Origin: Macrostomum hystrix
Taxonomy: Eukaryota; Animalia; Platyhelminthes
Length of the DNA: 64,000 nt
Direction of reading: 5' to 3'
NCBI GenBank assembly: GCA_950097015.1
Contig: CATNEN010000014.1
Coordinates: 682,001-746,000, forward strand
Shown: one piece after another, positions 259 to 43,172 of the stretch
How positions within the stretch are numbered: the stretch's first letter is position 1
Layout: every line of letters begins with the position of its first letter
Notes under the pieces: model-generated
Told to the model about the DNA's origin: nothing
Databases searched by the model: none
What the model saw: only the letters and a program-made list of their open reading frames with translations
Program-made: the position numbers and the translations under genes

Positions 259-772
259 TGGTGCATGTTTACACGTGCAACCATATAAAATATAATGCAA
301 TAAGCCTAACGATGAAAGAAGTTAGCTAGCTATGTCAATATAGCCTAAAGGTTGATTAATCTATGTTATTACAAATGGCAACATATAGGCCTAGTACGGT
401 CACCAAGACCAATGAAGATGATTGCATGGCTGAATATTGATAGCTAGTTTCTATGAATATAAGTTTTTAACGCACTTTCAAAGAAGCAGAAAGCGGTATA
501 ATGAAGTTTAAAGTTTTTATGCGTTAATGGGCCTAGTTCAAAATGCAGTGAAATGAAAGTTTTTTTATAATAGAGAGAATAGCAGTAGGGTATTATAGTT
601 TATATTTAGTATCTGTGGTTAGAAAAAAAAGTAACAATGTTCTATTTTTAACTTTTAGATTTTAACTTTTAGATCTTACTAGCAAGTTTTGCCCCCCTTC
701 GGAGAGCAGAAATACTTTTAATTCGTCTAGTATATACTTTGTAGCAGCTGAATTTACAGCTTTTTAAAGCTA

Positions 773-2028
773 CAATGAACCCCCAGTTGACAATGATCCC
801 CCAGTTGACAATGATCCCCCAGTTGACAATGAACCCCCAGTTGACAATGAACCCCCAGTTGACAACGATCCCCCAGTTGACAATGATCCCCCATTTGACA
901 ATGATCCCCCAGTTGACAATGATCCCACAGTTGACAATGATCCCCCAGTTGACAAAGATCCCCCAGTTCACAATGATCACCCAGTTGATGATGATCCCCC
1001 AGTTGATGATGATCCCCCAGTTGAAAATGATCCCCCAGTTGACAATGATCCCCCAGTTGACAATGATCCCCCAGTTAACAAAGATCCCCCAGTTCACAAT
1101 GATCCCCCAGTTGATGAAGTCTCCCCATTGATGATGATCCCCAGTTAACAATGTTCCTCCATTTGACAATGTTCCCCCAGTTGACAATGATCCCCCAGTT
1201 GATGATGATCACCCAGTTGACAATGATCCCCCAGTTGACAATGATCCCCCAGTTGACAATGATCCCCCAGTTGACAATGATCCTCCAGTTGATGATGATC
1301 CCCCAGTTGAAAATGATCCCCCAGTTGACAATGATCCCCCAGTTGAGAATGATCCCCCAGTTGACAATGATCCCCCAGTTAACAAAGATCCCCCAGTTCA
1401 CAATGGTCCCCCAGTTGATGAAGTCTCCCCATTGATGATGATCCCTAGTTAACAATGTTCCTCCAGTTGACAATGTTCCCCCAGTTGACAATGACCCCCC
1501 AGTTGACAACGATCCCCCAGTTGACAATGATCCCCCAGTTGACAATGATCCCCCAGTTGACAATGATCCCACAGTATACAATGATCCCCCAGTTGACAAA
1601 GATCCCCCAGTTCACAATGATCCCCCAGTTGACAAAGATCCCCCAGTTCTCAATGATCCCCCAGTTGATGATGATCCCCAGTTGATGATGATTCCCCAGT
1701 TGACAATTATCCCCCAGTTGACCATTACCCCCCAGTTGACAATGATCTCTCAGTTCACAATGATCCCCCAGTTGACAATGATCCCCCAGTTGACAATGAA
1801 CCCCCAGTTGACAATGAACCCCCAGTTGACAAAGATCCCCCAGTTGACAATGATCCCCCATTTGACAATGATCCCCCAGTTGACAATGATCCCCCAGTTG
1901 ACAATGATCCCCCAGTTGACAATGATCCCCCAGTTGACAATGATCCCCCAGTCGACAATTATCCCCCAGTTTACCATGATCCCCCAGTTCACCATGATCC
2001 CCATTTTGATGATGACTCCCCAGTTGAC
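773..2028. repeat. 18-bp satellite array (GTTGACAATGATCCCCCA), unit 1
   Basis: Direct 18-bp periodicity; source of the LTMIPQ / STGGSL / VNWGII pseudo-ORFs. Confidence 0.97.
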
Positions 2029-5000
2029 GTTGATTTTTCAAACGCTGGGTTAGCCAAGATTCAAACTCAGGTTTCGCCATGTTTTAAACCCTGGTGGGCT
2101 ATGATTCAAACTCTCGTTTTGCCATGATTCAGACTCTGGTTGGCTATGATTCAAACTCTGGTTTAGCCAAGATTCAAACTCTGGTTGGCTATGATTCAAA
2201 CTCTGGTTTAGCCATGATTCAAACGCTGGGTTAGCCATGATTGAAACTCGGTTTTTGCCATGATTCAAACTCTGGTTTAGCCATGATTCAAACGCTGGGT
2301 TAGCCATGATTGAAACTCTGGTTTAGCCAAGATTCAAACTCTGGTTTAGCCATGATTCAGACTCTGGTTTAGCCATGATTCAAACTCTGGTGTAGCCATT
2401 ATTCAAACTCTGGTTTAGCCATGATTCAAACTCTAGTTTAGCCATGATTCAGACTCTGGTTTAGCCATGATTCAAACTCTGGTGTAGCCATTATTCAAAC
2501 TCTGGTTTAGCCATGATTCAAACTCTAGTTTAGCCATGCTGATGATGATGGTTTAGCCATGATTCAAACTCTAGTTTAGCCATGCTGATGATGATGGTTT
2601 AGCCATGATTTAGTCTCTGGTTTAGCCATGATTCAAACTCTGGTTTAGCCATGATTCAGACGCTGGTTTAGCCATGATTCAAACTCTGGTGTTGCCAATA
2701 TTCAAACTCTGGTTTAGCCATGATTCAAACTCTGGTTTAGCCATGATTCAGACGCTGGTTTAGCCATGATTCAGACGCTGGTTTAGCCATGATTCAAACT
2801 CTGGTTTAGCCATGGTTCAAACTCTGGTTTAGCCATGATTCAGACTCTAGTTTAGCCATGATTCAGACTCTGGTTTAGCCATGATTCAGACTCTAGTTTA
2901 GCCATGATTCAGACTCTGGTTTAGCCATGATTCAGACTCTGGTTTAGCCATGATTCAGACTCTATTTTAGCAATGATTTAGACTATGGTTTAGCCATGAT
3001 TCAGACTCTAGGTTAGCCATGATTCAAACGTTGGTTTAGCCATGATTCAGACTCTGGTTTAGCCATGACTCAAACTCTGGTTTAGCCATGATTCAAACTC
3101 TGGTTTAGCCATGATTCAAACTCTGGTTTAGCCATGATTCAAACTCTGGTTTAGCCATGATTCAAACTCTGGTTTAGCCATGATTCAAACTCTGGTTTAG
3201 CCATGATTCAAACTCTGGTTTAGCCATGATTCAGACTCTGGTTTAGCCATGATTCAGACTCTGGTTTAGCCATGATTCAAACTCTGCTTTAGCCATGATT
3301 CAGACGCTGGTTTAGCCATGATTCAGACTCTGGTTTAGCCAAGATTCAAACTCTAGTTTAGCCATGATTCAAGATCTGGTTTAGCCATGATTCAAACTCT
3401 GGTTTAGCCATGATTCAGACTCTATTTTAGCAATGATTCAGACTATGGTTTAGCCATGATTCAGACTCTAGGTTAGCCATGATTCAAACGTTGGTTTAGC
3501 CATGATTCAGACTCTGGTTTAGCCATGACTCAAACTCTGGTTTAGCCATGATTCAAACTCTGGTTTAGCCATGATTCAAACTCTGGTTTAGCCATGATTC
3601 AAACTCTGGTTTAGCCATGATTCAAACTCTGGTTAAGCCATGATTCAAACTCTGGTTTAGCCATGATTCAAACTCTGGTTTAGCCATGATTCAGACTCTG
3701 GTTTAGCCATGATTCAGACTCTGGTTTAGCCATGATTCAAACTCTGCTTTAGCCATGATTCAGACGCTGGTTTAGCCATGATTCAGACTCTGGTTTAGCC
3801 AAGATTCAAACTCTAGTTTAGCCATGATTCAAGATCTGGTTTAGCCATGATTCAAACTCTGGTTTAGCCATGATTCAAACTCTGGTTTAGCCATGATTCA
3901 AACTCTGGTTAAGCCATGATTCAGACTCTGGTTTAGCCATGATTCAAACTCTGCTTTAGCCATGATTCAGACGCTGGTTTAGCCATGATTCAGACTCTGG
4001 TTTAGCCATGATTCAAACTCTAGTTTAGCCATGATTCAAGATCTGGTTTAGCCATGATTCAAACTCTGGTTTAGCCATGATTCAAACTCTGGTTTAGCCA
4101 TGATTCAGACGCTGGTTTAGCCATGATTCAGACTCTGGTTTAGCCAAGATTCAAACTCTAGTTTAGCCATGATTCAAGATCTGGTTTAGCCATGATTCAA
4201 ACTCTGGTTTAGCCATGATTCAAACTCTGGTTTAGCCATGATTCAAACTCTGGTTAAGCCATGATTCAGACTCTGGTTTAGCCATGATTCAAACTCTGCT
4301 TTAGCCATGATTCAGACGCTGGTTTAGCCATGATTCAGACTCTGGTTTAGCCATGATTCAAACTCTAGTTTAGCCATGATTCAAGATCTGGTTTAGCCAT
4401 GATTCAAACTCTGGTTTAGCCATGATTCAAACTCTGGTTTAGCCATGATTCAAACTCTGGTTAAGCCATGATTCAGACTCTGGTTTAGCCATGATTCAAA
4501 CTCTGCTTTAGCCATGATTCAGACGCTGGTTTAGCCATGATTCAGACTCTGGTTTAGCCATGATTCAAACTCTAGTTTAGCCATGATTCAAGATCTGGTT
4601 TAGCCATGATTCAAACTCTGGTGTAGCCATTATTCAAACTCTGGTTTAGCCATGATTCAAACTCTAGTTTAGCCATGCTGATGATGATGGTTTAGCCATG
4701 ATTCAAACTCTAGTTTAGCCATGCTGATGATGATGGTTTAGCCATGATTTAGTCTCTGGTTTAGCCATGATTCAAACTCTGGTTTAGCCATGATTCAAAC
4801 TCTGGTTTAGCCATGATTCAAACTCTGGTTAAGCCATGATTCAGACTCTGGTTTAGCCATGATTCAAACTCTGCTTTAGCCATGATTCAGACGCTGGTTT
4901 AGCCATGATTCAGACTCTGGTTTAGCCATGATTCAAACTCTAGTTTAGCCATGATTCAAGATCTGGTTTAGCCATGATTCAAACTCTGGTTTAGCCATGA

Positions 5001-6679
5001 TTCAAACTCTGGTTTAGCCATGATTCAGACGCTGGTTTAGCCATGATTCAGACTCTGGTTTAGCCAAGATTCAAACTCTAGTTTAGCCATGATTCAAGAT
5101 CTGGTTTAGCCATGATTCAAACTCTGGTTTAGCCATGATTCAAACTCTGGTTTAGCCATGATTCAAACTCTGGTTAAGCCATGATTCAGACTCTGGTTTA
5201 GCCATGATTCAAACTCTGCTTTAGCCATGATTCAGACGCTGGTTTAGCCATGATTCAGACTCTGGTTTAGCCATGATTCAAACTCTAGTTTAGCCATGAT
5301 TCAAGATCTGGTTTAGCCATGATTCAAACTCTGGTTTAGCCATGATTCAAACTCTGGTTTAGCCATGATTCAAACTCTGGTTAAGCCATGATTCAGACTC
5401 TGGTTTAGCCATGATTCAAACTCTGCTTTAGCCATGATTCAGACGCTGGTTTAGCCATGATTCAGACTCTGGTTTAGCCATGATTCAAACTCTAGTTTAG
5501 CCATGATTCAAGATCTGGTTTAGCCATGATTCAAACTCTGGTGTAGCCATTATTCAAACTCTGGTTTAGCCATGATTCAAACTCTAGTTTAGCCATGCTG
5601 ATGATGATGGTTTAGCCATGATTCAAACTCTAGTTTAGCCATGCTGATGATGATGGTTTAGCCATGATTTAGTCTCTGGTTTAGCCATGATTCAAACTCT
5701 GGTTTAGCCATGATTCAGACGCTGGTTTAGCCATGATTCAAACTCTGGTGTTGCCAATATTCAAACTCTGGTTTAGCCATGATTCAAACTCTGGTTTAGC
5801 CATGATTCAGACGCTGGTTTAGCCATGATTCAGACGCTGGTTTAGCCATGATTCAAACTCTGGTTTAGCCATGGTTCAAACTCTGGTTTAGCCATGATTC
5901 AGACTCTAGTTTAGCCATGATTCAGACTCTGGTTTAGCCATGATTCAGACTCTAGTTTAGCCATGATTCAGACTCTGGTTTAGCCATGATTCAGACTCTG
6001 GTTTAGCCATGATTCAGACTCTATTTTAGCAATGATTCAGACTATGGTTTAGCCATGATTCAGACTCTAGGTTAGCCATGATTCAAACGTTGGTTTAGCC
6101 ATGATTCAGACTCTGGTTTAGCCATGACTCAAACTCTGGTTTAGCCATGATTCAAACTCTGGTTTAGCCATGATTCAAACTCTGGTTTAGCCATGATTCA
6201 AACTCTGGTTTAGCCATGATTCAAACTCTGGTTAAGCCATGATTCAGACTCTGGTTTAGCCATGATTCAAACTCTGCTTTAGCCATGATTCAGACGCTGG
6301 TTTAGCCATGATTCAGACTCTGGTTTAGCCATGATTCAAACTCTAGTTAAGCCATGATTCAGACTCTGGTTTAGCCATGATTCAAACTCTGGTTTAGCCA
6401 TGATTCAGACGCTGGTTTAGCCATGATTCAGACTCTGGTTTAGCCATGATTCAAACTCTGGTTTAGCCATGATTCAAACTCTGGTTAAGCCATGATTCAG
6501 ACTCTGGTTTAGCCATGATTCAAACTCTGGTTTAGCCATGATTCAGACTCTGGTTTAGCCATGATTCAAACTCTGGTTTAGCCATGATTCAAACTCTGGT
6601 TTAGCCATGATTCAAACTCTGGTTTAGCCATGATTCAAACTCTGGTTTAGCCATGATTCAAACTCTGGTTTAGCAATGA
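2029..6679. repeat. 23-bp satellite array (CCATGATTCAAACTCTGGTTTAG), unit 1
   Basis: Direct 23-bp periodicity, about 200 monomers. Confidence 0.97.
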
Positions 6680-6773
6680 CTAGCAAGTTTTGCCCCCCTT
6701 CGGAGAGCAGAAATACTTTTAATTCGTCTAGTATATACTTTGTAGCAGCTGAATTTACAGCTTTTTAAAGCTA

Positions 6774-8046
6774 CAATGAACCCCCAGTTGACAATGATCC
6801 CCCAGTTGACAATGATCCCCCAGTTGACAATGAACCCCCAGTTGACAATGAACCCCCAGTTGACAACGATCCCCCAGTTGACAATGATCCCCCATTTGAC
6901 AATGATCCCCCAGTTGACAATGATCCCACAGTTGACAATGATCCCCCAGTTGACAAAGATCCCCCAGTTCACAATGATCACCCAGTTGATGATGATCCCC
7001 CAGTTGATGATGATCCCCCAGTTGAAAATGATCCCCCAGTTGACAATGATCCCCCAGTTGACAATGATCCCCCAGTTAACAAAGATCCCCCAGTTCACAA
7101 TGATCCCCCAGTTGATGAAGTCTCCCCATTGATGATGATCCCCAGTTAACAATGTTCCTCCATTTGACAATGTTCCCCCAGTTGACAATGATCCCCCAGT
7201 TGATGATGATCACCCAGTTGACAATGATCCCCCAGTTGACAATGATCCCCCAGTTGACAATGATCCCCCAGTTGACAATGATCCTCCAGTTGATGATGAT
7301 CCCCCAGTTGAAAATGATCCCCCAGTTGACAATGATCCCCCAGTTGAGAATGATCCCCCAGTTGACAATGATCCCCCAGTTAACAAAGATCCCCCAGTTC
7401 ACAATGGTCCCCCAGTTGATGAAGTCTCCCCATTGATGATGATCCCTAGTTAACAATGTTCCTCCATTTGACAATGTTCCCCCAGTTGACAATGATCCCC
7501 CAGTTGATGATGATCACCCAGTTGACAATGATCCCCCAGTTGACAATGATCCCCCAGTTGACAATGATCCCCCAGTTGACAATGATCCTCCAGTTGATGA
7601 TGATCCCCCAGTTGAAAATGATCCCCCAGTTGACAATGATCCCCCAGTTGAGAATGATCCCCCAGTTGACAATGATCCCCCAGTTAACAAAGATCCCCCA
7701 GTTCACAATGGTCCCCCAGTTGATGAAGTCTCCCCATTGATGATGATCCCTAGTTAACAATGTTCCTCCAGTTGACAATGTTCCCCCAGTTGACAATGAT
7801 CCCCCAGTTGACAACGATCCCCCAGTTGACAATGATCCCCCAGTTGACAATGATCCCCCAGTTGACAATGATCCCACAGTATACAATGATCCCCCAGTTG
7901 ACAAAGATCCCCCAGTTGACAATGATCCCCCAGTTGACAATGATCCCCCAGTTGACAATGATCCCCCAGTCGACAATTATCCCCCAGTTTACCATGATCG
8001 CCCAGTTCACCATGATCCCCATTTTGATGATGACTCCCCAGTTGAC
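6774..8046. repeat. 18-bp satellite array, unit 2
   Basis: 18-bp periodicity with 304-bp internal block duplications. Confidence 0.95.
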
Positions 8047-11000
8047 GTTGATTTTTCAAACGCTGGGTTAGCCAAGATTCAAACTCAGGTTTCGCCATGT
8101 TTTAAACCCTGGTGGGCTATGATTCAAACTCTCGTTTTGCCATGATTCAGACTCTGGTTGGCTATGATTCAAACTCTGGTTTAGCCAAGATTCAAACTCT
8201 GGTTGGCTATGATTCAAACTCTGGTTTAGCCATGATTCAAACGCTGGGTTAGCCATGATTGAAACTCGGTTTTTGCCATGATTCAAACTCTGGTTTAGCC
8301 ATGATTCAAACGCTGGGTTAGCCATGATTGAAACTCTGGTTTAGCCAAGATTCAAACTCTGGTTTAGCCATGATTCAGACTCTGGTTTAGCCATGATTCA
8401 AACTCTGGTGTAGCCATTATTCAAACTCTGGTTTAGCCATGATTCAAACTCTAGTTTAGCCATGATTCAGACTCTGGTTTAGCCATGATTCAAACTCTGG
8501 TGTAGCCATTATTCAAACTCTGGTTTAGCCATGATTCAAACTCTAGTTTAGCCATGCTGATGATGATGGTTTAGCCATGATTCAAACTCTAGTTTAGCCA
8601 TGCTGATGATGATGGTTTAGCCATGATTTAGTCTCTGGTTTAGCCATGATTCAAACTCTGGTTTAGCCATGATTCAGACGCTGGTTTAGCCATGATTCAA
8701 ACTCTGGTGTTGCCAATATTCAAACTCTGGTTTAGCCATGATTCAAACTCTGGTTTAGCCATGATTCAGACGCTGGTTTAGCCATGATTCAGACGCTGGT
8801 TTAGCCATGTTTCAAACTCTGGTTTAGCCATGGTTCAAACTCTGGTTTAGCCATGATTCAGACTCTAGTTTAGCCATGATTCAGACTCTGGTTTAGCCAT
8901 GATTCAGACTCTAGTTTAGCCATGATTCAGACTCTGGTTTAGCCATGATTCAGACTCTGGTTTAGCCATGATTCAGACTCTATTTTAGCAATGATTCAGA
9001 CTATGGTTTAGCCATGATTCAGACTCTAGGTTAGCCATGATTCAAACGTTGGTTTAGCCATGATTCAGACTCTGGTTTAGCCATGACTCAAACTCTGGTT
9101 TAGCCATGATTCAAACTCTGGTTTAGCCATGATTCAAACTCTGGTTTAGCCATGATTCAAACTCTGGTTTAGCCATGATTCAAACTCTGGTTAAGCCATG
9201 ATTCAAACTCTGGTTTAGCCATGATTCAAACTCTGGTTTAGCCATGATTCAGACTCTGGTTTAGCCATGATTCAGACTCTGGTTTAGCCATGATTCAAAC
9301 TCTGCTTTAGCCATGATTCAAACTCTGGTGTAGCCATTATTCAAACTCTGGTTTAGCCATGATTCAAACTCTAGTTTAGCCATGCTGATGATGATGGTTT
9401 AGCCATGATTCAAACTCTAGTTTAGCCATGCTGATGATGATGGTTTAGCCATGATTTAGTCTCTGGTTTAGCCATGATTCAAACTCTGGTTTAGCCATGA
9501 TTCAGACGCTGGTTTAGCCATGATTCAAACTCTGGTGTTGCCAATATTCAAACTCTGGTTTAGCCATGATTCAAACTCTGGTTTAGCCATGATTCAGACG
9601 CTGGTTTAGCCATGATTCAGACGCTGGTTTAGCCATGTTTCAAACTCTGGTTTAGCCATGGTTCAAACTCTGGTTTAGCCATGATTCAGACTCTAGTTTA
9701 GCCATGATTCAGACTCTGGTTTAGCCATGATTCAGACTCTAGTTTAGCCATGATTCAGACTCTGGTTTAGCCATGATTCAGACTCTGGTTTAGCCATGAT
9801 TCAGACTCTATTTTAGCAATGATTCAGACTATGGTTTAGCCATGATTCAGACTCTAGGTTAGCCATGATTCAAACGTTGGTTTAGCCATGATTCAGACTC
9901 TGGTTTAGCCATGACTCAAACTCTGGTTTAGCCATGATTCAAACTCTGGTTTAGCCATGATTCAAACTCTGGTTTAGCCATGATTCAAACTCTGGTTTAG
10001 CCATGATTCAAACTCTGGTTAAGCCATGATTCAAACTCTGGTTTAGCCATGATTCAAACTCTGGTTTAGCCATGATTCAGACTCTGGTTTAGCCATGATT
10101 CAGACTCTGGTTTAGCCATGATTCAAACTCTGCTTTAGCCATGATTCAGACGCTGGTTTAGCCATGATTCAGACTCTGGTTTAGCCAAGATTCAAACTCT
10201 AGTTTAGCCATGATTCAAGATCTGGTTTAGCCATGATTCAAACTCTGGTTTAGCCATGATTCAGACTCTATTTTAGCAATGATTCAGACTATGGTTTAGC
10301 CATGATTCAGACTCTAGGTTAGCCATGATTCAAACGTTGGTTTAGCCATGATTCAGACTCTGGTTTAGCCATGACTCAAACTCTGGTTTAGCCATGATTC
10401 AAACTCTGGTTTAGCCATGATTCAAACTCTGGTTTAGCCATGATTCAAACTCTGGTTTAGCCATGATTCAAACTCTGGTTAAGCCATGATTCAAACTCTG
10501 GTTTAGCCATGATTCAAACTCTGGTTTAGCCATGATTCAGACTCTGGTTTAGCCATGATTCAGACTCTGGTTTAGCCATGATTCAAACTCTGCTTTAGCC
10601 ATGATTCAGACGCTGGTTTAGCCATGATTCAGACTCTGGTTTAGCCAAGATTCAAACTCTAGTTTAGCCATGATTCAAGATCTGGTTTAGCCATGATTCA
10701 AACTCTGGTTTAGCCATGATTCAAACTCTGGTTTAGCCATGATTCAAACTCTGGTTAAGCCATGATTCAGACTCTGGTTTAGCCATGATTCAAACTCTGC
10801 TTTAGCCATGATTCAGACGCTGGTTTAGCCATGATTCAGACTCTGGTTTAGCCATGATTCAAACTCTAGTTTAGCCATGATTCAAGATCTGGTTTAGCCA
10901 TGATTCAAACTCTGGTTTAGCCATGATTCAAACTCTGGTTTAGCCATGATTCAAACTCTGGTTAAGCCATGATTCAGACTCTGGTTTAGCCATGATTCAA

Positions 11001-12928
11001 ACTCTGCTTTAGCCATGATTCAGACGCTGGTTTAGCCATGATTCAGACTCTGGTTTAGCCATGATTCAAACTCTAGTTTAGCCATGATTCAAGATCTGGT
11101 TTAGCCATGATTCAAACTCTGGTGTAGCCATTATTCAAACTCTGGTTTAGCCATGATTCAAACTCTAGTTTAGCCATGCTGATGATGATGGTTTAGCCAT
11201 GATTCAAACTCTAGTTTAGCCATGCTGATGATGATGGTTTAGCCATGATTTAGTCTCTGGTTTAGCCATGATTCAAACTCTGGTTTAGCCATGATTCAGA
11301 CGCTGGTTTAGCCATGATTCAAACTCTGGTGTTGCCAATATTCAAACTCTGGTTTAGCCATGATTCAAACTCTGGTTAAGCCATGATTCAGACGCTGGTT
11401 TAGCCATGATTCAGACGCTGGTTTAGCCAAGATTCAAACTCTGGTTTAGCCATGATTCAGACTCTGGTTTAGCCATGATTCAGACTCTAGTTTAGCCATG
11501 ATTCAGACTCTGGTTTAGCCATGATTCAGACTCTGGTTTAGCCATGATTCAGACGCTGGTTTAGCCATGATTCAGACTCTGGTTTAGCCATGATTCAAAC
11601 TCTGGTTTAGCAATGATTCAGACTATGGTTTAGCCATGATTCAGACTCTAGGTTAGCCATGATTCAAACTCTGGTTTAGCCATGATTCAGACTCTGGTTT
11701 AGCCATGACTCAAACTCTGGTTTAGCCATGATTCAAACTCTGGTTTAGCCATGATTCAAACTCTGGTTTAGCCATGATTCAAACTCTGGTTTAGCCATGA
11801 TTCAAACTCTGGTTAAGCCATGATTCAGACTCTGGTTTAGCCATGATTCAAACTCTGCTTTAGCCATGATTCAGACGCTGGTTTAGCCATGATTCAGACT
11901 CTGGTTTAGCCATGATTCAAACTCTGGTTTAGCAATGATTCAGACTCTGGTTTAGCCATGATTCAAACTCTAGTTTAGCCATGATTCAAGATCTGGTTTA
12001 GCCATGATTCAAACTCTGGTGTAGCCATTATTCAAACTCTGGTTTAGCCATGATTCAAACTCTAGTTTAGCCATGCTGATGATGATGGTTTAGCCATGAT
12101 TCAAACTCTAGTTTAGCCATGCTGATGATGATGGTTTAGCCATGATTTAGTCTCTGGTTTAGCCATGATTCAAACTCTGGTTTAGCCATGATTCAGACGC
12201 TGGTTTAGCCATGATTCAAACTCTGGTGTTGCCAATATTCAAACTCTGGTTTAGCCATGATTCAAACTCTGGTTAAGCCATGATTCAGACGCTGGTTTAG
12301 CCATGATTCAGACGCTGGTTTAGCCATGATTCAAACTCTGGTTTAGCCATGATTCAGACTCTGGTTTAGCCATGATTCAGACTCTAGTTTAGCCATGATT
12401 CAGACTCTGGTTTAGCCATGATTCAGACTCTGGTTTAGCCATGATTCAGACGCTGGTTTAGCCATGATTCAGACTCTGGTTTAGCCATGATTCAAACTCT
12501 GGTTTAGCAATGATTCAGACTATGGTTTAGCCATGATTCAGACTCTAGGTTAGCCATGATTCAAACTCTGGTTTAGCCATGATTCAGACTCTGGTTTAGC
12601 CATGACTCAAACTCTGGTTTAGCCATGATTCAAACTCTGGTTTAGCCATGATTCAAACTCTGGTTTAGCCATGATTCAAACTCTGGTTTAGCCATGATTC
12701 AAACTCTGGTTAAGCCATGATTCAGACTCTGGTTTAGCCATGATTCAAACTCTGCTTTAGCCATGATTCAGACGCTGGTTTAGCCATGATTCAGACTCTG
12801 GTTTAGCCATGATTCAAACTCTGGTTTAGCAATGATTCAGACTCTGGTTTAGCCATGATTCAGACGCTGGTTTAGCCATGATTCAAGCTCTATTTTTGCC
12901 ATGATTCAAATTCAGGTTTGCTATGATT
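8047..12928. repeat. 23-bp satellite array, unit 2
   Basis: 23-bp periodicity, about 212 monomers. Confidence 0.95.
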
Positions 12929-13009
12929 TATGATATTTTATTTACGAAATGAAAAAAATAAATCAAAATAATCTTCAATCACTACTGGCTGAAAATTAGT
13001 CTAAATGAT

Positions 13010-13082
13010 TTGACGCAGTGCAGAATCGAACCCTAGCCTAGCCTAACTTATTCCTAGTGCCTAACACATCGGCTATTCCGAC
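13010..13082 (-). promoter_or_regulatory. tRNA-like / SINE-head-like RNA polymerase III A-box and B-box segment in the Helitron 5' region (also in units 3-8)
   Basis: Minus strand GTCGGAA-TAGCCGATGTGTTAGGC...GGGTTCGATTC; A-box 13065-13075, B-box 13023-13032, spacing about 43 nt as in tRNAs; acceptor and T stems degenerate, so not a functional tRNA. Confidence 0.45.
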
Positions 13083-13515
13083 TGTTGGTTAGTGGGTGCA
13101 GAAATCAGCCTTATAAAATGAATTCTCAAAGTTCTGGCTTTGTACAATGAAGTAAGAAAATAGAGTACACTCAGTCTCGCGGTTGGTTGTGTACATTTAT
13201 TTCCAATTTGTCTCCAGAGTGCAGGCTTCAAATTCAATCAGCTAGGGGTTGTTGCGCAATTTGACGATGCAATTCTAATTCAGTGGCAGTGAGTGGTTTG
13301 ACCTTTGAATTTGACCTTTGAAAAATCATGTTTTTCGAATATTTAATCCCTTTAGCAATAAAGTTAAGCTTAATAAAAATACGTGTAAAATTGTCCCCAT
13401 ATTTGGCATCTTTTGGTGAAGAAATGGTGAAAATTGGTTGAGCCGTTCGGGAGAAAATCAGTTACAAGCAACCAAGCAAGCAAGCAAGCAAGCATTTCAT
13501 TTTTAGTATAGTGGA

Positions 13516-16500
13516 CTAGCAAGTTTTGCCCCCCTTCGGGGAGCAGAAATACTTTTAATTCGTCTATAATATACTTTTTAGCAGCTGAATTTACAGCTTT
13601 TTAATTCTACATTGATCCCCCAGTTGACAATGATCCCCCAGTTGACAATGATCCCCCAGTTGACAACGATCACCCAGTTGACAATGATCCCCCATTTGAC
13701 AATGATCCCCCAGTTGACAATGATCCCACAGTTGACAATGATCCCCCAGTTCACAATGATCACCCAGTTGATGATGATCCCCCAGTTGATGATGATCCCC
13801 CAGTTGAAAATGATCCCCCAGTTGACAATGATCCCCCAGTTGACAATGATCCCACAGTTGACAATGATCCCCCAGTTGACAAAGATCCCCCAGTTCACAA
13901 TGATCACCCAGTTGATGATGATCCCCCAGTTGATGATGATCCCCCAGTTGAAAATGATCCCCCAGTTGACAATGATCCCCCAGTTGACAATGATCCCCCA
14001 GTTGACAATGATCCCCCAGTTAACAAAGATCCCCCAGTTGACAATGATCCCCCAGTTGACAATGATCCCCCAGTTGACAATGATCCCCCAGTTGATGATG
14101 ATCCCCCAGTTGAAAATGATCCCCCAGTTGACAATGATCCCCCAGTTGAGAATGATCCCCCAGTTGACAATGATCCCCCAGTTGATGAAGTCTCCCCATT
14201 GATGATGATCCCTAGTTAACAATGTTCCTCCAGTTGACAATGTTCCCCCAGTTGACAATGATCCCCCAGTTGACAATGATCCACCAGTTGACAATGATCC
14301 CGCCGGTTGACAATGATCCCACAGTTGACAACGATCCCCCAGTTGACAATGATCCCCCAGTTGACAATGATCCCACAGTGGACAATGATCCCCCAGTTGA
14401 CAAAGATCCCCCAGTTCCCAATGATCACCCAGTTGATGATGATCCCCCAGTTGATGATGATCCCCCAGTTGAAAATGATCCCCCAGTTGACAATGATCCC
14501 CCAGTTGACAAAGATCCCCCAGTTCACAATTATCACCCAGTTGATGATGATCCCCCAGTTGACAATGATCCCCCAGTTGACAATGATCCCCCAGTTGACA
14601 ATGATCCCCCAGTTAACAAAGATCCCCCAGTTCACAATGATCCCCCAGTTGATGAAGTCTCCCCATTGATGATGATCCCCAGTTAACAATGTTCCTCCAG
14701 TTGACAATGTTCCCCCAGTTGACAACGATCCCCCAGTTGATGATGATCACCCAGTTGACAATGATCCCCCAGTTGACAATGATCCCCCAGTTGACAATGA
14801 TCCCCCAGTTGACAATGATCCCCCATTTGACAATGATCACCCAGTTGACAATGATCCCCCAGTTGACAATGATCCCCCAGTTGACAATGATCCCCCAGTT
14901 GACAATGATCCCGCCGGTTGACAATGATCCCACAGTTGACAATGAACCCCCAGTTGACAATGATCCCCCAGTTGATGATGATCCCCCAGTTGACAATGAT
15001 CCCCCAGTTGACAATGATCCCCCAGTTGACAATGAACCCCCAGTTGACAACGATCCCCCAGTTGACAATGATCCCCCAGTTGACAATGATCCCCCAGTTG
15101 ACAATGATCCCACAGTATACAATGATCCCCCAGTTGACAAAGATCCCCCAGTTCACAATGATCCCCCAGTTGACAAAGATCCCCCAGTTCTCAATGATCC
15201 CCCAGTTGATGATGATCCCCAGTTGATGACGATTCCCCAGTTGACAACTATCCCCCAGTTGACCATTACCCCCCAGTTGACAATGATCTCTCAGTTCACA
15301 ATGATCCCCCAGTTGACAATGATCCCCCAGTTGACAATGAACCCCCAGTTGACAATGAACCCCCAGTTGACAAAGATCCCCCAGTTGACAATGATCCCCC
15401 ATTTGACAATGATCCCCCAGTTGACAATGATCCCCCAGTTGACAATGATCCCCCAGTTGACAATGATCCCCCAGTTGACAATGATCCCCCAGTTGACAAT
15501 GATCCCCCAGTCGACAATTATCCCCCAGTTTACCATGATCCCCCAGTTCACCATGATCCCCATTTTGATGATGACTCCCCAGTTGACGTTGATTTTTCAA
15601 ACGCTGGGTTAGCCAAGATTCAAACTCAGGTTTCGCCATGTTTTAAACCCTGGTGGGCTATGATTCAAACTCTCGTTTTGCCATGATTCAAACTCTGGTT
15701 TAGCCAAGATTCAAACTCTGGTTGGCTATGATTCAAACTCTGGTTTAGCCATGATTCAAACGCTGGGTTAGCCATGATTGAAACTCGGTTTTTGCCATGA
15801 TTCAAACTCTGGTTTAGCCAAGATTCAAACTCTGGTTGGCTATGATTCAAACTCTGGTTTAGCCATGATTCAGACTCTGGTTTAGCCATGATTCAAACTC
15901 TGGTTTAGCCATGATTCAGACTCTGGTTTAGCCATGATTCAAACTCTGGTGTAGCCATTATTCAAACTCTGGTTTAGCCATGATTCAAACTCTAGTTTAG
16001 CCATGCTGATGATGATGGTTTAGCCATGATTCAAACTCTGGTTTAGCCATGATTTAGTCTCTGGTTTAGCCATGATTCAAACTCTAGTTTAGCCATGCTG
16101 ATGATGATGGTTTAGCCATGATTCAAACGCTGGTTCAGCCATGATTTAGTCTCTGGTTTAGCCATGATTCAAACTCTGGTTTAGCCATGATTCAGACGCT
16201 GGTTTAGCCATGATTGAAACTCTGGTTTAGCCATGATTCAGACGCTGGTTTAGCCATGATTGAAACTCTGGTTTAGCCATGATTCAGACTCTGGTTTAGC
16301 CATGATTCAGACGCTGGTTTAGCCATGATTCGGACGCTGGTTTAGCCATGATTGAAACTCTGGTTTTGCCATGATTCAGACTCTGGTTTAGCCATGATTC
16401 ACACTCTGGTTTAGCCATGGTTCAAACTCTGGTTTAGCCATGATTCAGACTCTAGTTTAGCCATGATTCAGACTCTGGTTTAGCCATGATTCAGACTCTA

Positions 16501-17204
16501 TTTTAGCCATGATTCAGACTCTAGTTTAGCCACGATTCAGACTCTGGTTTAGCCATGATTCAAACTCTATTTTTGCAATGATTCAAACTCAGGTGTGCTA
16601 TGATTTATGATATTTTATTTACGAAATGAAAAAAATAAATTAAAATAGTCTTCAATCACTACTGGCTGAAAATTAGTCTAAAATGATTTGACGCAGTGCA
16701 GAATCGAACCCTAGCCTAGCCTATAACCTATTCCTAGTGCCTACACATCGGCTATTCCGACTGTTGGTTAGTGGGTGCAAAAATCAGCCTTATAAAATGA
16801 ATTCTCAAAGTTCTGGCTTTGTACAATGAAGTGAGAAAATAGAGTACACTCAGTCTCGCGGTTGGTTGTGTACATTTATTTCCAATTTGTCTCCAGAGTG
16901 CAGGCTTTAAATTCAATCAGCTAGGGGTTGTTGCGCAATTTGACGATGCAATTCTAATTCAGTGGCAGTGAGTGAAATTCTCAATAGTCTAAGATGGTTT
17001 GACCTTTGAAAAAATCATGTTTTTCGAATATTTAATCCTCTTAGCAATAAAGTTCAGCTTAATAAAAATACGTGTAAAATTGTCCCCATATTTGGCATCT
17101 TTTGGTGAAGAAATGGTGAAAATCGGTTGAGCCGTTCGGGAGAAAATCAATTACAAGCAAGCAACCAACCAACCAACCAACCATTTCATTTTTAGTATAG
17201 TGGA
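13516..17204 (-). mobile_element. Helitron unit 3 (3689 bp): 18-bp array ~13610-15587, 23-bp array ~15588-16605
   Basis: TC 5' end at 17204, hairpin at 13527-13545, CTAG at 13516. Confidence 0.85.
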
Positions 17205-34624: not shown

Positions 34625-37600
34625 CTAGCAAGTTTTGCCCCCCTTCGGGGAGCAGAAATACTTTTAATTCGTCTAGTATATACTTTTTAGCAGCTGAATT
34701 TACAGCTTTTTAAAGCTACAATGAACCCCCAGTTGACAATGATCCCCCAGTTGACAATGATCCCCCAGTTGACAATGAAACCCCAGTTAACAATGAACCC
34801 CCAGTTGACAACGATCCCCCAGTTGACAATGATCCCCCATTTGACAATGATCCCCCAGTTGACAATGATCCCACAGTTGACAATGATCCCCCAGTTGACA
34901 AAGATCCCCCAGTTCACAATGATCACCCAGTTGATGATGATCCCCCAGTTGATGATGATCCCCCAGTTGAAAATGATCCCCCAGTTGACAATGATCCCCC
35001 AGTTGACAATGATCCCACAGTTGACAATGATCCCCCAGTTGACAAAGATCCCCCAGTTCACAATGATCACCCAGTTGATGATGATCCCCCAGTTGATGAT
35101 GATCCCCCAGTTGAAAATGATCCCCCAGTTGACAATGATCCCCCAGTTGACAATGATCCCCCAGTTGACAATGATCCCCCAGTTAACAAAGATCCCCCAG
35201 TTCACAATGATCCCCCAGTTGATGAAGTCTCCCCATTGATGATGATCCCCCAGTTGAAAATGATCCCCCAGTTGACAATGATCCCCCAGTTGACAATGAT
35301 CCCCCAGTTGACAATGATCCCCCAGTTAACAAAGATCCCCCAGTTCACAATGATCCCCCAGTTGATGAAGTCTCCCCATTGATGATGATCCCCAGTTAAC
35401 AATGTTCCCCCAGTTGACAATGATCCCCCAGTTGATGATGATCACCCAGTTGACAATGATCCCCCAGTTGACAATGATCCCCCAGTTGACAATGATCCCC
35501 CAGTTGACAATGATCCCCCAGTTGATGATGATCCCCCAGTTGACAATGATCCCCCAGTTGAGAATGATCCCTCAGTTGACAATGATCCCCCAGTTAACAA
35601 AGATCCCGCCGGTTGACAATGATCCCACAGTTGACAATGAACCCCCAGTTGACAATGATCCCCCAGTTGATGATGATCCCCCAGTTGACAATGATCCCCC
35701 AGTTGACAATGATCCCCCAGTTGACAATGAACCCCCAGTTGACAACGATCCCCCAGTTGACAATGATCCCCCAGTTGACAATGATCCCCCAGTTGACAAT
35801 GATCCCCCAGTTAACAAAGATCCCCCAGTTCACAATGATCCCCCAGTTGACAATGAACCCCCAGTTGACAATGAACCCCCAGTTGACAAAGATCCCCCAG
35901 TTGACAATGATCCCCCATTTGACAATGATCCCCCAGTTGACAATGATCCCCCAGTTGACAATGATCCCCCAGTTGACAATGATCCCCCAGTTGACAATGA
36001 TCCCCCAGTCGACAATTATCCCCCAGTTTACCATGATCCCCCAGTTCACCATGATCCCCATTTTGATGATGACTCCCCAGTTGACGTTGATTTTTCAAAC
36101 GCTGGGTTAGCCAAGATTCAAACTCAGGTTTCGCCATGTTTTAAACCCTGGTGGGCTATGATTCAAACTCTCGTTTTGCCATGATTCAGACTCTGGTTTA
36201 GCCAAGATTCAAACTCTGGTTGGCTATGATTCAAACTCTGGTTTAGCCATGATTCAAGCGCTGGGTTAGCCATGATTGAAACTTGGTTTTTGCCATGATT
36301 CAAACTCTGGTTTAGCCATGATTCAAACGCTGGGTTAGCCATGATTGAAACTCTGGTTTAGCCAAGATTCAAACTCTGGTTGGCTATGATTCAAAGTCTG
36401 GTTTAGCCATGATTCAAACTCTGGTTTAGCCATGATTCAGACTCTGGTTTAGCCATGATTCAAACTCTGGTGTAGCCATTATTCAAACTCTGGTTTAGCC
36501 ATGATTCAAACTCTAGTTTAGCCATGCTGATGATGATGGTTTAGCCATGATTCAAACTCTAGTTTAGCCATGCTGATGATGATGGTTTAGCCATGATTTA
36601 GTCTCTGGTATAGCCATGATTCAGACGCTGGTTTAGCCATGATTCAAACTCTGGTGTAGCCAATATTCAAACTCTGGTTTAGCCATGATTCAAACTCTGG
36701 TTTAGCCATGATTCAGACTCTGGTTTAGCCATGATTCAGACGCTGGTTTAGCCATGATTGAAACTCTGGTTTAGCCATGATTCAGACTCTGGTTTAGCCA
36801 TGATTCAGACTCTGGTTAAGCCATGATTCAGACTCTGGTTTAGCCATGATTCAAACTCTGCTTTAGCCATGACTCAAACTCTGGTTTAGCCATGATTCGG
36901 ACTCTGGTTTAGCCATGATTCAAACTCTGCTTTAGCCATGATTCAAACTCTGGTTTAGCCATGATTCAAACTCTGCTTTAGCCATGATTCAAACTCTGCT
37001 TTAGCCATGATTCAGACGCTGGTTTAGGCATGATTCAAACTCTGGTTTAGCCATGATTCAGACGCTGGTTTAGCCATGCTGATGATGATGGTTTAGCCAT
37101 GATTCAGACTCTGGTTTAGCCATGATTCAGACTCTGGTTTAGCCATGACTCAAACTCTGGTTTAGCCATGATTCAGACGCTGGTTTAGCCATGATTGAAA
37201 CTCTGGTTTAGCCATGCTGATGATGATGGTTTAGCCATGATTCAGACTCTGGTTTAGCCATGATTCAAACTCTGGTGTAGCCAATATTCAAACTCTGGTT
37301 TAGCCATGATTCAAACTCTAGTTTAGCCATGATTCAAGATCTGGTTTAGCCATGATTCAGACGCTGGTTTAGCCATGCTGATGATGATGGTTTAGCCATG
37401 ATTCAAACTCTGGTTTAGCCATGATTCAAACGATGGTTTAGCCATGATTTAAACGATGGTTTAGCGATGATTCAAACGATGGTTTAGCCATGATTCAAAC
37501 GATGGTTTAGCCATGATTCAAACTCTGGTTTTGCCATGATTCAAACGATGGTTTAGCCATGATTTAAACGATGGTTTAGCCATGATTTAAACGATGGTTT

Positions 37601-38821
37601 AGCCATGATTCAAACGATGGTTTAGCCATGATTTAAACGACGGTTTAGCCATGATTCAAACGATGGTTTAGCCATGATTCAAACGATGGTTTAGCCATGA
37701 TTCAAACGATGGTTTTGCCATGATTCAAACTCTGGTTTAGCCATGATTCAAACTCTGGTTTAGCCATGATTCAAACGATGGTTTAGCAATGATTCAAACG
37801 ATGGTTTAGCCATGATTCAAACGATGGTTTAGCCATGATTCAAACAATTGTTTAGCCATGATTCAAGATCTGGTTTAGCCATGATTTAAACTCTGGTTTA
37901 GCCATGATTCAAGCTCTGGTTTTGCCATGATCCAAACTCTGGTTTAGCCATGATTTAAACGATGGTTTAGCCATGATTCAAACGATGGTTTAGCCATGAT
38001 TCAAACGATGGTTTAGCCATGATTCAAACTCTGGTTTTGCCATGATTCAAACGATGGTTTAGCCATGATTCAAACTCTGGTTTAGCCATGATTCAAACTC
38101 TGGTTTAGCCATGATTTAAACGATGGTTTAGCCATGATTCAAACTCTGGTTTTGCCATGATTCAAACGATGGTTTAGCCATGATTCAAACGATGGTTTAG
38201 CCATGATTCAAACTCTGGTTTAGCCATGATTCAGACTCTATTGTTGCAATGATTCAAACTCAGGTTTGCTATGATTTATGATATTTTATTTACGAAATGA
38301 AAAAAATAAATCAAAATAATCTTCAATCACTACTGGCTGAAAATTAGTCTAAATGATTTGACGCAGTGCAGAATCGAACCCTAGCCATGCCTAACTTATT
38401 CCTAGTGCCTAACACATCGGCTATTCCGACTGTTGGTTAGCGGGTGCAGAAATCAGCCTTATAAAATGAATTCTCAAAGTTCTGGCTTTGTACAATGAAG
38501 TAAGAAAATAGAGTACACTCAGTCTCGCGGTTGGTTGTGTACATTTATTTCCAATTTGTCTCCAGAGTGCAGGCTTCAAATTCAATCAGCTTGGGGTTGT
38601 TGCGCAATTTGACGATGCAATTTCAATTCAGTGGCAGTGAGTAAAATTCTCAATAGGCCAAGATGGTTTGACCTTTGAAAAAATCATGTTTTTCGAATAT
38701 TTAATCCTCTTAGCAATAAAGTTAAGCTTAATAAAAATACGTGTAAAATTGTCCCCATATTTGGCATCTTTTGGTGAAGAAATGGTGAAAATCGGTTGAG
38801 CCGTTCGGGAGAAAATCAATT

Positions 38822-38853
<32 letters not shown>

Positions 38854-38881
38854 CCAAGCATTTCATTTTTAGTATAGTGGA
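34625..38881 (-). mobile_element. Helitron unit 8 (4257 bp): 18-bp array ~34719-36085, 23-bp array ~36086-38277
   Basis: Complete ends; own variant of the 5' region and microsatellite (38821-38860). Confidence 0.85.
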
Positions 38882-41800
38882 CTAGCAAGTTTTGCCCCCC
38901 TTCGGGGAGCAGAAATATTTTTAATTCGTCCAGTATATACCTTTTAGCAGCTGTAGTTTCAGCTTTTTTAAAGCTGCAATGATCCCCCAGCTGACAATGA
39001 TCACCCAGTTGCCAATAATACCCCAGTTGATGATGATCCCCTAGTTGACAATGATCCCCCAGTTGACACTGATCCCCCACTTGACAATGATCCCCCAGTT
39101 GACAATGATCCCCCCGTTTACAATGATCCCCCAGTTGACAATGATCACCCAGTTGACAATGATCCCCCAGTTGACAATGATCACCCAGTTGACAATGATC
39201 ACCCAGTTGACAATGATTTTCCAGTTGACAATGATTCCCCAGTTGACAATGATCCCCCAGTTGACAATGATCCCCCAGTTGATGATGATCCCACAGTTGA
39301 CAATGATCCCCCAGTTGACAATGATCCCCCAGTTGACAATGATCCCCCAGTTGATGATGATCCCACAGTTGACAATGATCCCCCAGTTGACAATGATCCC
39401 ACAGTTGACAATGATCCCCCAGTTGACAATGATACCCCAGTCGACAATGATTCCCCAGTTGACAATGATCCCCCAGTTGATGATGACTCCCCATTGATGA
39501 TGATCCCCAGTTGACAATGTTCTCCCACTTGACAATGACCCCCCAGTTGACAATGATCCCCCCGTTTACAATGATCCCCCAGTTGACAATGATCACCCAG
39601 TTGACAATGATCCCCCAGTCGACAATGATTCCCCAGTCAACAATGATCCCCAGTTGACAATGTTCCCCCAGTTGACAATGATTCCCCAGTTGACAATGAT
39701 CCCCCAGTTGATGATGACTCCCTATTGATGATGATCCCCAGTTGACAATGATCCCCCAGTTGATAATTATTCCCCAGTTGACAATGAACCCCCAGTTAAT
39801 GATGATCACCCAGTTGATGATGACTCCCCATTGATGATGATGCCCAGTTGACCATCATCCCCCAGTTGACAATGATCCCCCAGTCGACAATGATCCCCCA
39901 GTCGACAATGATTCCCCAGTTGATGATGATCAACCAGTTGACAATGATCCCCCAGTTGACAATGATCCCCCAGTTGATGATGATCCCACAGTTGACAATG
40001 ATCCCCCAGTTGACAATGATCCCCCAGTTGACAATGATCCCCCAGTTGATGATGATCCCACAGTTGACAATGATCCCCCAGTTGACAATGATCCCACAGT
40101 TGACAATGATCCCCCAGTTGACAATGATCACCCAGTTGACAATGATCACCCAGTTGACAATGATCCCCCAGTTGATGATGACTCCCCATTGATGATGATC
40201 CCCAGTTGACAATGTTCTCCCACTTGACAATGACCCCCCAGTTGACAATGATCCCCCCGTTTACAATGATCCCCCAGTTGACAATGATCACCCAGTTGAC
40301 AATGATCCCCCAGTCGACAATGATTCCCCAGTCAACAATGATCCCCAGTTGACAATGTTCCCCCAGTTGACAATGATTCCCCAGTTGACAATGATCCCCC
40401 AGTTGATGATGACTCCCTATTGATGATGATCCCCAGTTGACAATGATCCCCCAGTTGATAATTATTCCCCAGTTGACAATGAACCCCCAGTTAATGATGA
40501 TCACCCAGTTGATGATGACTCCCCATTGATGATGATGCCCAGTTGACCATCATCCCCCAGTTGACAATGATCCCCCAGTCGACAATGATCCCCCAGTCGA
40601 CAATGATTCCCCAGTTGATGATGATCAACCAGTTGACAATGATCCCCCAGTTGACAATGATCCCCCAGTTGATGATGATCCCACAGTTGACAATGATCCC
40701 CCAGTTGACAATGATCCCCCAGTTGACAATGATCCCCCAGTTGATGATGATCCCACAGTTGACAATGATCCCCCAGTTGACAATGATCCCACAGTTGACA
40801 ATGATCCCCCAGTTGACAATGATCACCCAGTTGACAATGATCACCCAGTTGACAATGATTTTCCAGTTGACAATGATTCCCCAGTTGACAATGATCCCCC
40901 AGTTGACAATGATCCCCCAGTTGATGATGATCCCACAGTTGACAATGATCCCCCAGTTGACAATGATCCCCCAGTTGACAATGATCCCCCAGTTGATGAT
41001 GATCCCACAGTTGACAATGATCCCACAGTTGACAATGATCCCCCAGTTGACAATGATCCCCTAGTTCACAATGATCCCCCAGATGATGATGATCCCCCAG
41101 TTGATGATGATCACCCAGTTGACAATGATCCCCCAGTTGACATTGATCCCCCAGTTTACAATGATCCCACAGTTGACAATGATTCCCCAGTTGACCATGA
41201 TCCCCCATTTGATGATGACTCCCAAATGATAATGATCCCCATTTGACAATGATCCCCAGTTGACCATGATCCCCCATTTGATGATGATTCCCCAGTTTAC
41301 AATTATCCCACAGTTGACGATTATCCCCCAGTTCTGGTTTTGCCATGATTCAAACTCTGATTTTGCCATGATTCAAACTCTGGTTTAGCCATGATTCAAA
41401 CTCTGGTTTAGCCATGATTCAAACTCTGGTTTAGCCATGATTCAAACTCTCATTTAGCCATGATTCAAACTCTGGTTTTGCCATGATTCAAACTTAAATT
41501 TAGCCATGATTCAGACTCTGGTTTAGCCATGATTCAGACTCTGGTTTAGCCTTGATTCAGACTCTGCCATGATTCAGACTCTGGTTTAGCCATGATTCAA
41601 ACGCTGGTTTTGCCATGAGAACTAATTCCCCTCCAGCAGCAGAGAACTAATTTCCCGAGCAGCAGAGAACTAATTTCCCGAGCAGCAGAGAACTAATTCC
41701 CCCAGCAGCAGAGAACTAATTCCCCCAGCAGCAGAGAACTAATTCCCCCAGCAGCAGAGAACTAATTCCCCCAGCAGCAGAGAACTAATTCCCCCAGCAG

Positions 41801-43156
41801 CAGAGAACTAATTCCCCCAGCAGCAGAGAACTAATTCCCCCAGCAGCAGAGAACTAATGTTCTCCAAACAGAAGAGAACCTCCATAATACCAGAATGGAG
41901 GCTACTTGCAGGCTACCAAACTCGCAGCAAGAAATGTTTGCCCTTTTTCTTTGACAGGAAACCATTGCCCCCAAATAGCATAGAAACGATGTGTCCATCA
42001 TTTTACTCAGCCCAGAAGGCAACAAATATCTCCTGTTACATCTCCTGTTACATGTGGCACGGTAGATACATTTAGAAAACTGTTAAACACATTTAGAAAA
42101 TCGTTGAGCACTTTAGAAAACGGTTTCGATCAGTGTTCGTCGAATAAAGTTTTATAATTATTATTATTAAATGAGCTATTTTTTTGATCGAATAACGCTT
42201 AAAACAATGCTAAAAAAATTTGAAATAATTTACGCTCTTAGCTGCGCTCAATATTTTTTTCTTGCAGTTCTCAATTGTGATATCGCCTGCAGCTATGCAC
42301 AAAAATATTTCCTTAGTTTTATTATCGAATTCCCGATACTCGAAAAAACTTATACTATTTTCTGAAAGGGAGTACAGGAATAATAAAGCTAACAAATATC
42401 TGCTTCGACAGTAGCTAACCAAAATCGCTTACTATTTATACTCGAACCAAAAATGCCCAAAAAGTACTAATAAATAGGAACTTACGTTTTTAACTGCTGA
42501 TGTTTAGAAGATTAGAAGAAAAAGAAGCAGTAACAAAACCGATGCTGAAATTCTACCTGCATTCTACAAAAGCATTAAAGTACTTTACTTCGGAGCTAGA
42601 TGAAAAGAAAGCGGCACAATGATCGAAGTCGAGACAAGGTTTGACAATAGAAAGGCTGCAGTTTTATGGATAGAAAGGAGGAGGAGAGGTCTCGCTAGCA
42701 TTGAGCATCATAAAAGCCCAATCATGAAATCTGCTATGTACGTTTTGCGTATTCAAATCAAATCACTCGATCAGCCAAGAGACAAATTTATAAACGTACG
42801 TAGGGGTCGAAAAGCAGTGACGCAATCCTATTCAATTGAGAGTATCGGGCCCTGTTCAGTGCTATACCAATGCACGCGCGGGCGAGAAAAAGCACCGATG
42901 CAATCTAATAAAACTGACAGTGTCCGGCCCTATTCTAATTTAACCTTGTTTGGCCTCCTATTGAAAGCAATAGGAAAACTCGTTTTTCGAATATTTAATA
43001 CCCTTGAAATTGAGACAGAATGATGAAATTTGATCAGTCTAATCCTTGGATGAATTGGCACTTTTTGGTGAAAACAGGAAAAAAAATGGTCTAGCCATTC
43101 ATTCGCTAGAGCGTTTCAGATGGACAGACAGATCTTAGACATTTAGTATAGTAGGA
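38882..43156 (-). mobile_element. Helitron unit 9 (divergent, probably chimeric): 18-bp array ~38977-41332, short 23-bp array ~41333-41617, third repeat, 5' end of a related family
   Basis: 3' hairpin+CTAG at 38882; 5' end A|TCCTACTATACTAAATG with (CTGT)n-like microsatellite at 43156; region 43055-43156 resembles but differs from the 5' region of units 2-8; linkage of the two ends is inferred. Confidence 0.55.
41617..41858. repeat. 23-bp minisatellite GAGAACTAATTCCCCCAGCAGCA, about 10 copies
   Basis: Direct periodicity, abutting the end of the other 23-bp array. Confidence 0.95.
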
Positions 43157-43172
43157 TGGTAATGGTAATTAT

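Follow-up and report, generated by a model that had tools for sequence, protein, structure and literature searches.

How does a 42-kb run of tandem repeats come to consist of transposable elements standing end to end, and is it the transposon or the host that has multiplied them? The question is raised by a 64,000-nucleotide (nt) stretch of the flatworm Macrostomum hystrix (contig CATNEN010000014.1 of assembly GCA_950097015.1, positions 682,001 to 746,000), which we refer to as the window and number from its first letter. It contains a train of Helitron units, which an earlier note on this DNA had interpreted as one rolling-circle concatemer. We favour, with a probability of roughly 0.7, an origin in two layers within a single A^T insertion site: a few joining events specific to Helitron ends would have built a founder train, which was then expanded by unequal exchange. 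The element in question is the following.

Positions 679-43156, minus strand: whole Helitron train of nine head-to-tail units, in a single A^T site, without target duplication.

Read on the minus strand from 43156 down to 679 (~42 kb), the nine units all have one orientation and share a tail composed of a hairpin and a terminal CTAG. The 26-nt tail motif CCCCGAAGGGGGGCAAAACTTGCTAG was found nine times with at most one mismatch, which bears out the nine 3' ends, each with a GC-rich hairpin 11 nt before CTAG, that had been noticed earlier. After seven of the nine tails a head starting with TC follows without any spacer, and the 26-mer spanning this junction, CTTGCTAG/TCCACTATACTAAAAATG (the slash marks the join), has 7 exact matches, all of them on the minus strand, against a chance expectation of 0. 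The tail ending at 6680 runs into an array of 23-mers with no head (CTAG/TCATTGCTAAACC). The six spacerless joins counted previously are indeed exact, and become seven when the outermost is included, but the six are in fact two junctions, each present three times within a perfect 8710-bp repeat, and are therefore not independent.

Positions 13498, 17187, 22208, 25897, 30918, 34607 and 38864, minus strand: exact sites of the junction 26-mer CTTGCTAG/TCCACTATACTAAAAATG.
Positions 679, 6680, 13516, 17205, 22226, 25915, 30936, 34625 and 38882, minus strand: last base of the nine tails (motif CCCCGAAGGGGGGCAAAACTTGCTAG).

The outer 5' boundary of the train reads ...ATTACCATTACCA/TCCTACTATAC (43157/43156), with the host side ending in ATTACCA, and the outer 3' boundary reads CTTGCTAG/TAAGATCT (679/678), with the host side starting with TAAGATC. 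The whole train occupies a single A^T site, in which the host A is the complement of 43157 and the host T the complement of 678, and the flanks carry no target-site duplication.

A full unit comprises, in order, a head of ~635 nt, an array of 23-mers (TCATGGCTAAACCAGAGTTTGAA; 39 to ~200 copies per full unit), an array of 18-mers (CAACTGGGGGATCATTGT; 61 to 109 copies per full unit) and a 111-nt tail. Eight units begin with a head of the form TCC(T)ACTATACTAAA, while the ninth begins with TC at a cryptic site; the typical head opens with TCCACTATACTAAAAATG and continues into a microsatellite of GCTT or GGTT repeats. The units, named U1 to U9 from the 5' end of the train, and the representative parts are listed below.

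Positions 43156-38882, minus strand: U1, 4275 nt.
Positions 38881-34625, minus strand: U2, 4257 nt; all four parts present, with private variants in the head.
Positions 34624-30936, minus strand: U3, 3689 nt; its head has a (GGTT)n microsatellite and variant states that are common in the genome.
Positions 30935-25915, minus strand: U4, 5021 nt; apparently recombinant, with a U8-type head, 23-mers of U8 and U2, and the U2 tail.
Positions 25914-22226, minus strand: U5, 3689 nt; exact copy of U3.
Positions 22225-17205, minus strand: U6, 5021 nt; exact copy of U4.
Positions 17204-13516, minus strand: U7, 3689 nt; exact copy of U3.
Positions 13515-6680, minus strand: U8, 6836 nt; full unit in which the 23-mer reaches ~200 copies, with the tail variant CTCC-GAA-GGGG.
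Positions 6679-679, minus strand: U9, 6001 nt; headless.
Positions 12882-13515, minus strand: representative head (634 nt), starting with TCCACTATACTAAAAATG; further heads start (high ends) at 17204, 22225, 25914, 30935, 34624 and 38881.
Positions 13516-13626, minus strand: representative tail (111 nt), with an AGCTG(n6)CAGCT stem-loop, an 8-bp GC-rich hairpin with a GAA loop, and CTAG.

The microsatellite just inside the 5' end (13456-13494 and equivalents, minus strand) varies between units: U4 and U8 have (GCTT)n and U3 has (GGTT)n, whereas the run of U2 is longer and mixed. Two units depart from the common plan. The head of U1 is distinct and longer (~1300 nt, TCCTACTATACTAAATGTC...) and resembles the other heads only in short patches; its interior holds a 23-mer array of its own, a short array of the shared 23-mer and a long 18-mer array. 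The first of these is a third satellite restricted to U1 (41617-41858, minus strand), in which the 23-mer GAGAACTAATTCCCCCAGCAGCA is repeated ~10 times (97% matches) between the head and the array of the shared 23-mer. The 8 nt with which the 3' flank of the train begins (TAAGATCT, 671-678) reappear at positions 19-26 of the U1 head (43131-43138, minus strand; …TGTCTAAGATCTGTC…) and the two diverge beyond; the match is probably due to chance, and could alternatively be the remnant of another truncated head. U9, the other unusual unit, starts as CTAG/TCATTGCTAAACCAGAG, i.e. with a 23-mer entered at its TC (a GAA/TC site).

Canonical Helitrons have a 5' TC and a 3' CTRR with a subterminal GC-rich hairpin ~10-12 nt upstream, and they insert between A and T without target-site duplication. 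The units examined here show the 5' TC, the 3' CTRR with its hairpin, and the A^T site free of duplication; in the tail, the hairpin CCCC-GAA-GGGG is followed by 11 nt and then CTAG. Folded as DNA, this hairpin has an 8-bp stem, including one T.G pair, and a GAA loop, with a TTCG loop on the opposite strand. Both loops had been proposed before from the letters, and both folds were recovered, at energies modestly better than those of shuffled sequences (z -1.9 and -1.6); conservation of the hairpin reflects the common descent of the nine tails, not statistics. Helentrons and Helitron2 elements are recognised by short terminal inverted repeats and by insertion between T and T. This class was rejected because the units lack terminal inverted repeats and use an A^T site instead of T/T; the 5' end TCCACTATAC is unrelated to the reverse complement of the 3' end (CTAGCAAGTTTTGC).

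No open reading frame (ORF) for a RepHel protein was found in the 64-kb window. A search of both strands for further CTRR ends behind perfect GC-rich hairpins gave none; it required stems of at least 5 bp and so passed over the family's own tails as well. No captured gene fragment was identified in the U1 head, whose ORFs have no Pfam match. Neither ARAGORN nor Rfam detected an RNA gene in the window, and the tRNA-like head motif GGGTTCGATTC does not correspond to a recognisable tRNA.

The dispersal of the family was assessed with public contigs matched to the head-plus-tail stretch 12900-13625, in which the microsatellite 13460-13502 was masked; short-read contigs do not cross the 5' end at this repeat, and the dispersal data therefore concern the 3' side. 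Two runs from the same organism yielded 796 and 1678 contigs matching at 85-100% identity, with a very high summed depth. In 25 contigs of run X3 the match extends across the tail and CTAG+T and then gives way to a median of 255 nt of mutually unlike, AT-rich sequence (agreement 0.47), and these contigs evidently represent the same 3' end at other loci. The earlier note would have been refuted by a motif confined to the array; at the 3' side it is not so confined, the 25 contigs carrying unrelated flanks past CTAG+T. A plain satellite without a transposon was likewise rejected, since the family numbers hundreds of diverged copies and its 3' ends are followed by unrelated sequence. Since the structural hallmarks are all present and the family is high-copy and, as read at its 3' ends, dispersed, with varied flanks after CTAG+T, the identification of the units as non-autonomous canonical Helitrons carrying two internal satellites is well supported.

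Outside this organism, a 734-nt contig from a second one (run X10) covers the tail, the exact join and the head (~94% identity; window 12915-13625). Head-to-tail joins of the family therefore exist outside this assembly. Parts of the head were also found in contigs from the organisms labelled C to F and from two macroalgae metagenomes; either the family and its head-to-tail arrangement are common to related species, or those samples contain DNA of such species. The metagenome collection was also scanned for exact matches to two patterns, a conserved 24-nt motif of the head and a 22-nt motif of the tail; neither scan turned up a copy from outside, and no empty site came to light.

How the nine units came to be nine is indicated by the perfect repetition in the middle of the train. 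Between 11944 and 38101 the sequence has a perfect period of 8710, extending over 26158 nt (3.003 copies) at 100% identity.

Positions 11944-38101, not stranded: period-8710 block, both edges of which lie inside 23-mers where the partners share a monomer.

Strings of monomer variants reveal that the 23-mer array of U4 opens with monomers 1 to 41 of U8 and continues as the array of U2, entered near its tenth monomer, and U4 (= U6) thus reads as a U8/U2 hybrid. Because the perfect 8710-bp block is edged within 23-mers and U4 is of recombinant make-up, four of the nine units, together with four of the joins, appear to be copies produced by unequal homologous exchange, or else an assembly effect. 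The block has the form expected if the 23-mer arrays of U2 and U8 had exchanged unequally, twice, or if slippage or an assembly effect had intervened. Mosaicism extends to the 18-mer arrays (that of U9 is like U3 at its 5' side and like U8 at its 3' side), and exchange between neighbouring units has evidently been recurrent. Copy gain through misaligned homologous exchange, as in a classical satellite, is thus found for the expansion step only, and not for the origin of the joins. With the copies set aside, the founder train would have comprised five units, U1-U2-U3-U8-U9.

These founders are heterogeneous. Pairwise comparison of the U2, U3 and U8 heads gives 17/577, 20/568 and 21/567 substitutions (2.9-3.7%), in addition to several indels, and there are four tail variants (U1; U2 = U4; U3; U8 = U9), of which that of U1 differs from the others at 9-13 of 111 sites (8-12%). 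U8 and U9 have identical tails, including the CTCC variant of the hairpin, are identical over their last 788 nt and have private monomer variants in common; the monomer variant with which U9 opens (TCATTGC...) is found at four places within U8 as well. We consider these two units to be sister copies, each other's closest relatives. In the variant table of the contigs, the head variant at 13295-13310 of U8 and U4 is private to the array, and the states common to U2 and U8 are rare genome-wide, at ~2-20% of depth (~2% at 13048), while those of U3 reach 20-98% of the genome-wide depth. The variant states group U2 with U8 and place U3 apart, unlike the star pattern of copies from one circle, although this comparison is semi-quantitative, since contig depth is not copy number.

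Taken together, these observations lead us to propose the two-layer origin in the following form. In the first layer, a small number of Helitron-end-specific events would have given rise to the founder train U1-U2-U3-U8-U9 with its exact CTAG/TC joins. Such events are needed because homologous exchange within the arrays copies joins and cannot create them, and at least three would be required: one for the join of the foreign-headed U1 to U2, at least one among the joins of U2, U3 and U8, and one for the junction at which the headless U9 follows U8. U9 would be a sister of the 3' part of U8, generated when the Rep nuclease nicked a cryptic A/TC in the GAA/TC of a 23-mer; the copied or displaced strand may then have been joined up again behind the tail without leaving the locus, or may have inserted anew at that A^T site within the array, with the same end structure in either case. 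For joins between unlike units, an incoming Helitron may have inserted between the host A and the T that opens a resident 5' TC, leaving a spacerless CTAG/TC; alternatively, the train may have been copied whole from an older one. Insertion between the host A and a resident TC is the simplest route that keeps to the canonical target rule. The exact CTAG/TC joins fit a rolling-circle product and, equally, insertion at a resident A/TC; circles of the Helraiser transposon carry exact TC/CTAG joins and serve as competent donors, and a joined end requires one nick only (PMC4778049). In the second layer, which the sequence itself displays, unequal homologous exchange of 23-mers between U2 and U8 produced the hybrid U4, and the 8710-bp dimer of U4 and U3 increased to three perfect copies, raising the number of units from five to nine.

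Several points weigh against this scenario. Whereas the second layer can be read directly from the sequence, the steps of the first are inferred. Helraiser did not display local hopping in human cells (PMC4778049), which counts against local re-insertion. The dispersed copies were read at their 3' ends only, the 5' microsatellite being masked, and the argument from rare and common states is semi-quantitative for the reason given above. The near-equal distances between heads (2.9-3.7%) would also fit an old uniform concatemer that diverged in place, and the perfect triplication could be an assembly effect.

Among the other explanations, purely serial insertion at the A/T of a resident 5' end, in the order U9, U8, U3, U2, U1 and guided by transposase binding to resident 5' ends, fares best, and we still regard it as unlikely. 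Every step would then obey the canonical A^T rule and joins between unlike units would be accounted for, and dimers of transposable elements can arise through insertion-site preference (McGurk and Barbash, as cited in PMC12628747). However, the close relationship of U8 and U9 and the missing head of U9 point to local copying rather than to two independent arrivals, and the lack of local hopping by Helraiser speaks against this explanation too.

Even less probable in our opinion is a single rolling-circle run on one circular Helitron, integrated once at A^T, with all differences between units due to decay in place. The single A^T site, the exact joins, the uniform orientation and the near-equal head distances agree with it, and circles with the same join have been recovered experimentally (PMC4778049). 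One circle would be expected to give one type of head and tail and a star phylogeny, but the train contains the U1 head of another subfamily, which is incompatible with the same circle, a U9 without a head, and the recombinant U4; four units are demonstrably recombinational copies, and U2 and U8 have genome-rare states in common while those of U3 are common to many dispersed copies. Of the concatemer proposed in the earlier note, the Helitron units, the single A^T site and the exact joins have stood, while its uniformity has not; and if the satellite look of the locus was ascribed there to rolling-circle replication, its units are indeed Helitrons but their expansion follows ordinary satellite dynamics, i.e. 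unequal exchange. That the assembler created or miscounted the repeats, or at any rate the perfect triplicate of 8710 bp, is very unlikely: 100% identity across 26 kb is unusual for old repeats, but the block edges lie in phase inside 23-mers as in genuine exchange, the founder joins sit in non-identical sequence, the head and tail occur in several independent runs and their join in a contig of a second organism, and such an error would touch the copy number only, not the nature of the train.

The two-layer origin raises a more general idea, which we put forward tentatively and consider rather doubtful: the Helitron transposase may routinely target resident ends (A/TC, or the circle-like CTAG/TC) and may initiate at cryptic A/TC sites of 23-mers. 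If this were true, Helitrons would build mixed-family trains and directly seed satellites with kilobase-sized units that are later expanded by host recombination, and the headless U9 would be the natural footprint of a mis-initiated copying event.

The train is intergenic and lies ~1.9 kb upstream of a polyprenyl synthetase gene, which is followed by a gene for an ABC transporter.

Positions 45053-46627, plus strand: exons of a polyprenyl synthetase (GGPP-synthase-like; Pfam PF00348, E 1e-23 and 7e-12).
Positions ~49000 to beyond 63000, plus strand: ABCC-type ABC transporter gene with GC-rich exons (ABC_membrane and two ABC_tran matches).

Other repeats are found in this neighbourhood. A 25-mer array of 15 copies (45832-46208) starts where one ORF of a polyprenyl synthetase exon ends. 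Many unrelated minisatellites occupy the stretches between exons in the part of the window with the transporter gene, namely a 65-mer in 29 copies (46647-48552), 29-mers in 18 copies (50011-50525, 52436-52956), an 18-mer in 53 copies (53763-54708), 31-mers (58085-60822) and a 27-mer in 35 copies (61244-62196). Just outside the train, 10 nt from its 5' boundary, an element of 182 bp resembling a miniature inverted-repeat transposable element (43166-43347) has 23-nt terminal inverted repeats (TAATTATCAGTGGCGTAGCTAGG and CCTAGCTACGCCACTGGTAATTA, 96% complementary), and a second inverted repeat (18 nt) is located at 43363-43425.

The locus is a new example of a known structure, Helitron trains having already been published from bats, flies and plants. 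Tandem canonical Helitrons form the Helitron-1_DPe arrays of the large Y of Drosophila pseudoobscura, which were detected with queries fusing the 3' end to the 5' end (PMC9248874), and Helibat arrays were reported in Myotis (Pritham and Feschotte 2007, as cited in PMC9248874 and PMC4778049). According to these accounts, whole elements are joined there from last to first base in one orientation, as in the present train, and the arrays are attributed to rolling-circle transposition. Unlike the arrays so described, the train studied here consists of non-autonomous units full of two satellites, mixes subfamilies and includes a headless unit, and about half of its copies demonstrably derive from unequal exchange in the cargo satellite. 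Truncated non-autonomous Helitrons also form tandem arrays in plant centromeres, for which aberrant rolling-circle replication was the explanation offered (Xiong 2016, summarised in PMC12628747). Those arrays are outlined in that summary as having many 5' ends and a single 3' end, whereas here nine tails are kept and one unit lacks its 5' end, which is the opposite polarity.

Satellite-carrying elements of the Helitron/Helentron type include Cg170 and others in Crassostrea gigas (PMC8268682) and DINE-1/DINE-TR1 in Drosophila (PMC4067079). Like them, the M. hystrix units have conserved ends and central satellite-like arrays of variable length, and in both cases elements, arrays and fragments have been recombined and tandemised; unlike many of them, which are Helentrons, they possess canonical ends (A^T, 5' TC, 3' CTAG, no terminal inverted repeat). 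The genomic CTAG/TC join is base-for-base identical to that of the Helraiser circle, an element that likewise has a subterminal hairpin and a CTAG end (PMC4778049). In contrast to the Helraiser join, which belongs to an episomal intermediate in cell culture (PMC4778049), the join described here is chromosomal, repeated and read from genomic sequence.

What distinguishes this train is its demonstrable recombinational expansion, its mixture of subfamilies and its headless unit starting at a cryptic TC. The mixture and the GAA/TC-started unit provide natural evidence on the choice of Helitron ends in vivo, and an annotation of the 42 kb should name Helitron copies rather than an anonymous satellite. 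The locus preserves both steps of the debated route from transposon to satellite, in which exact joins seed a multi-kilobase unit and exchange within the cargo minisatellite multiplies it.

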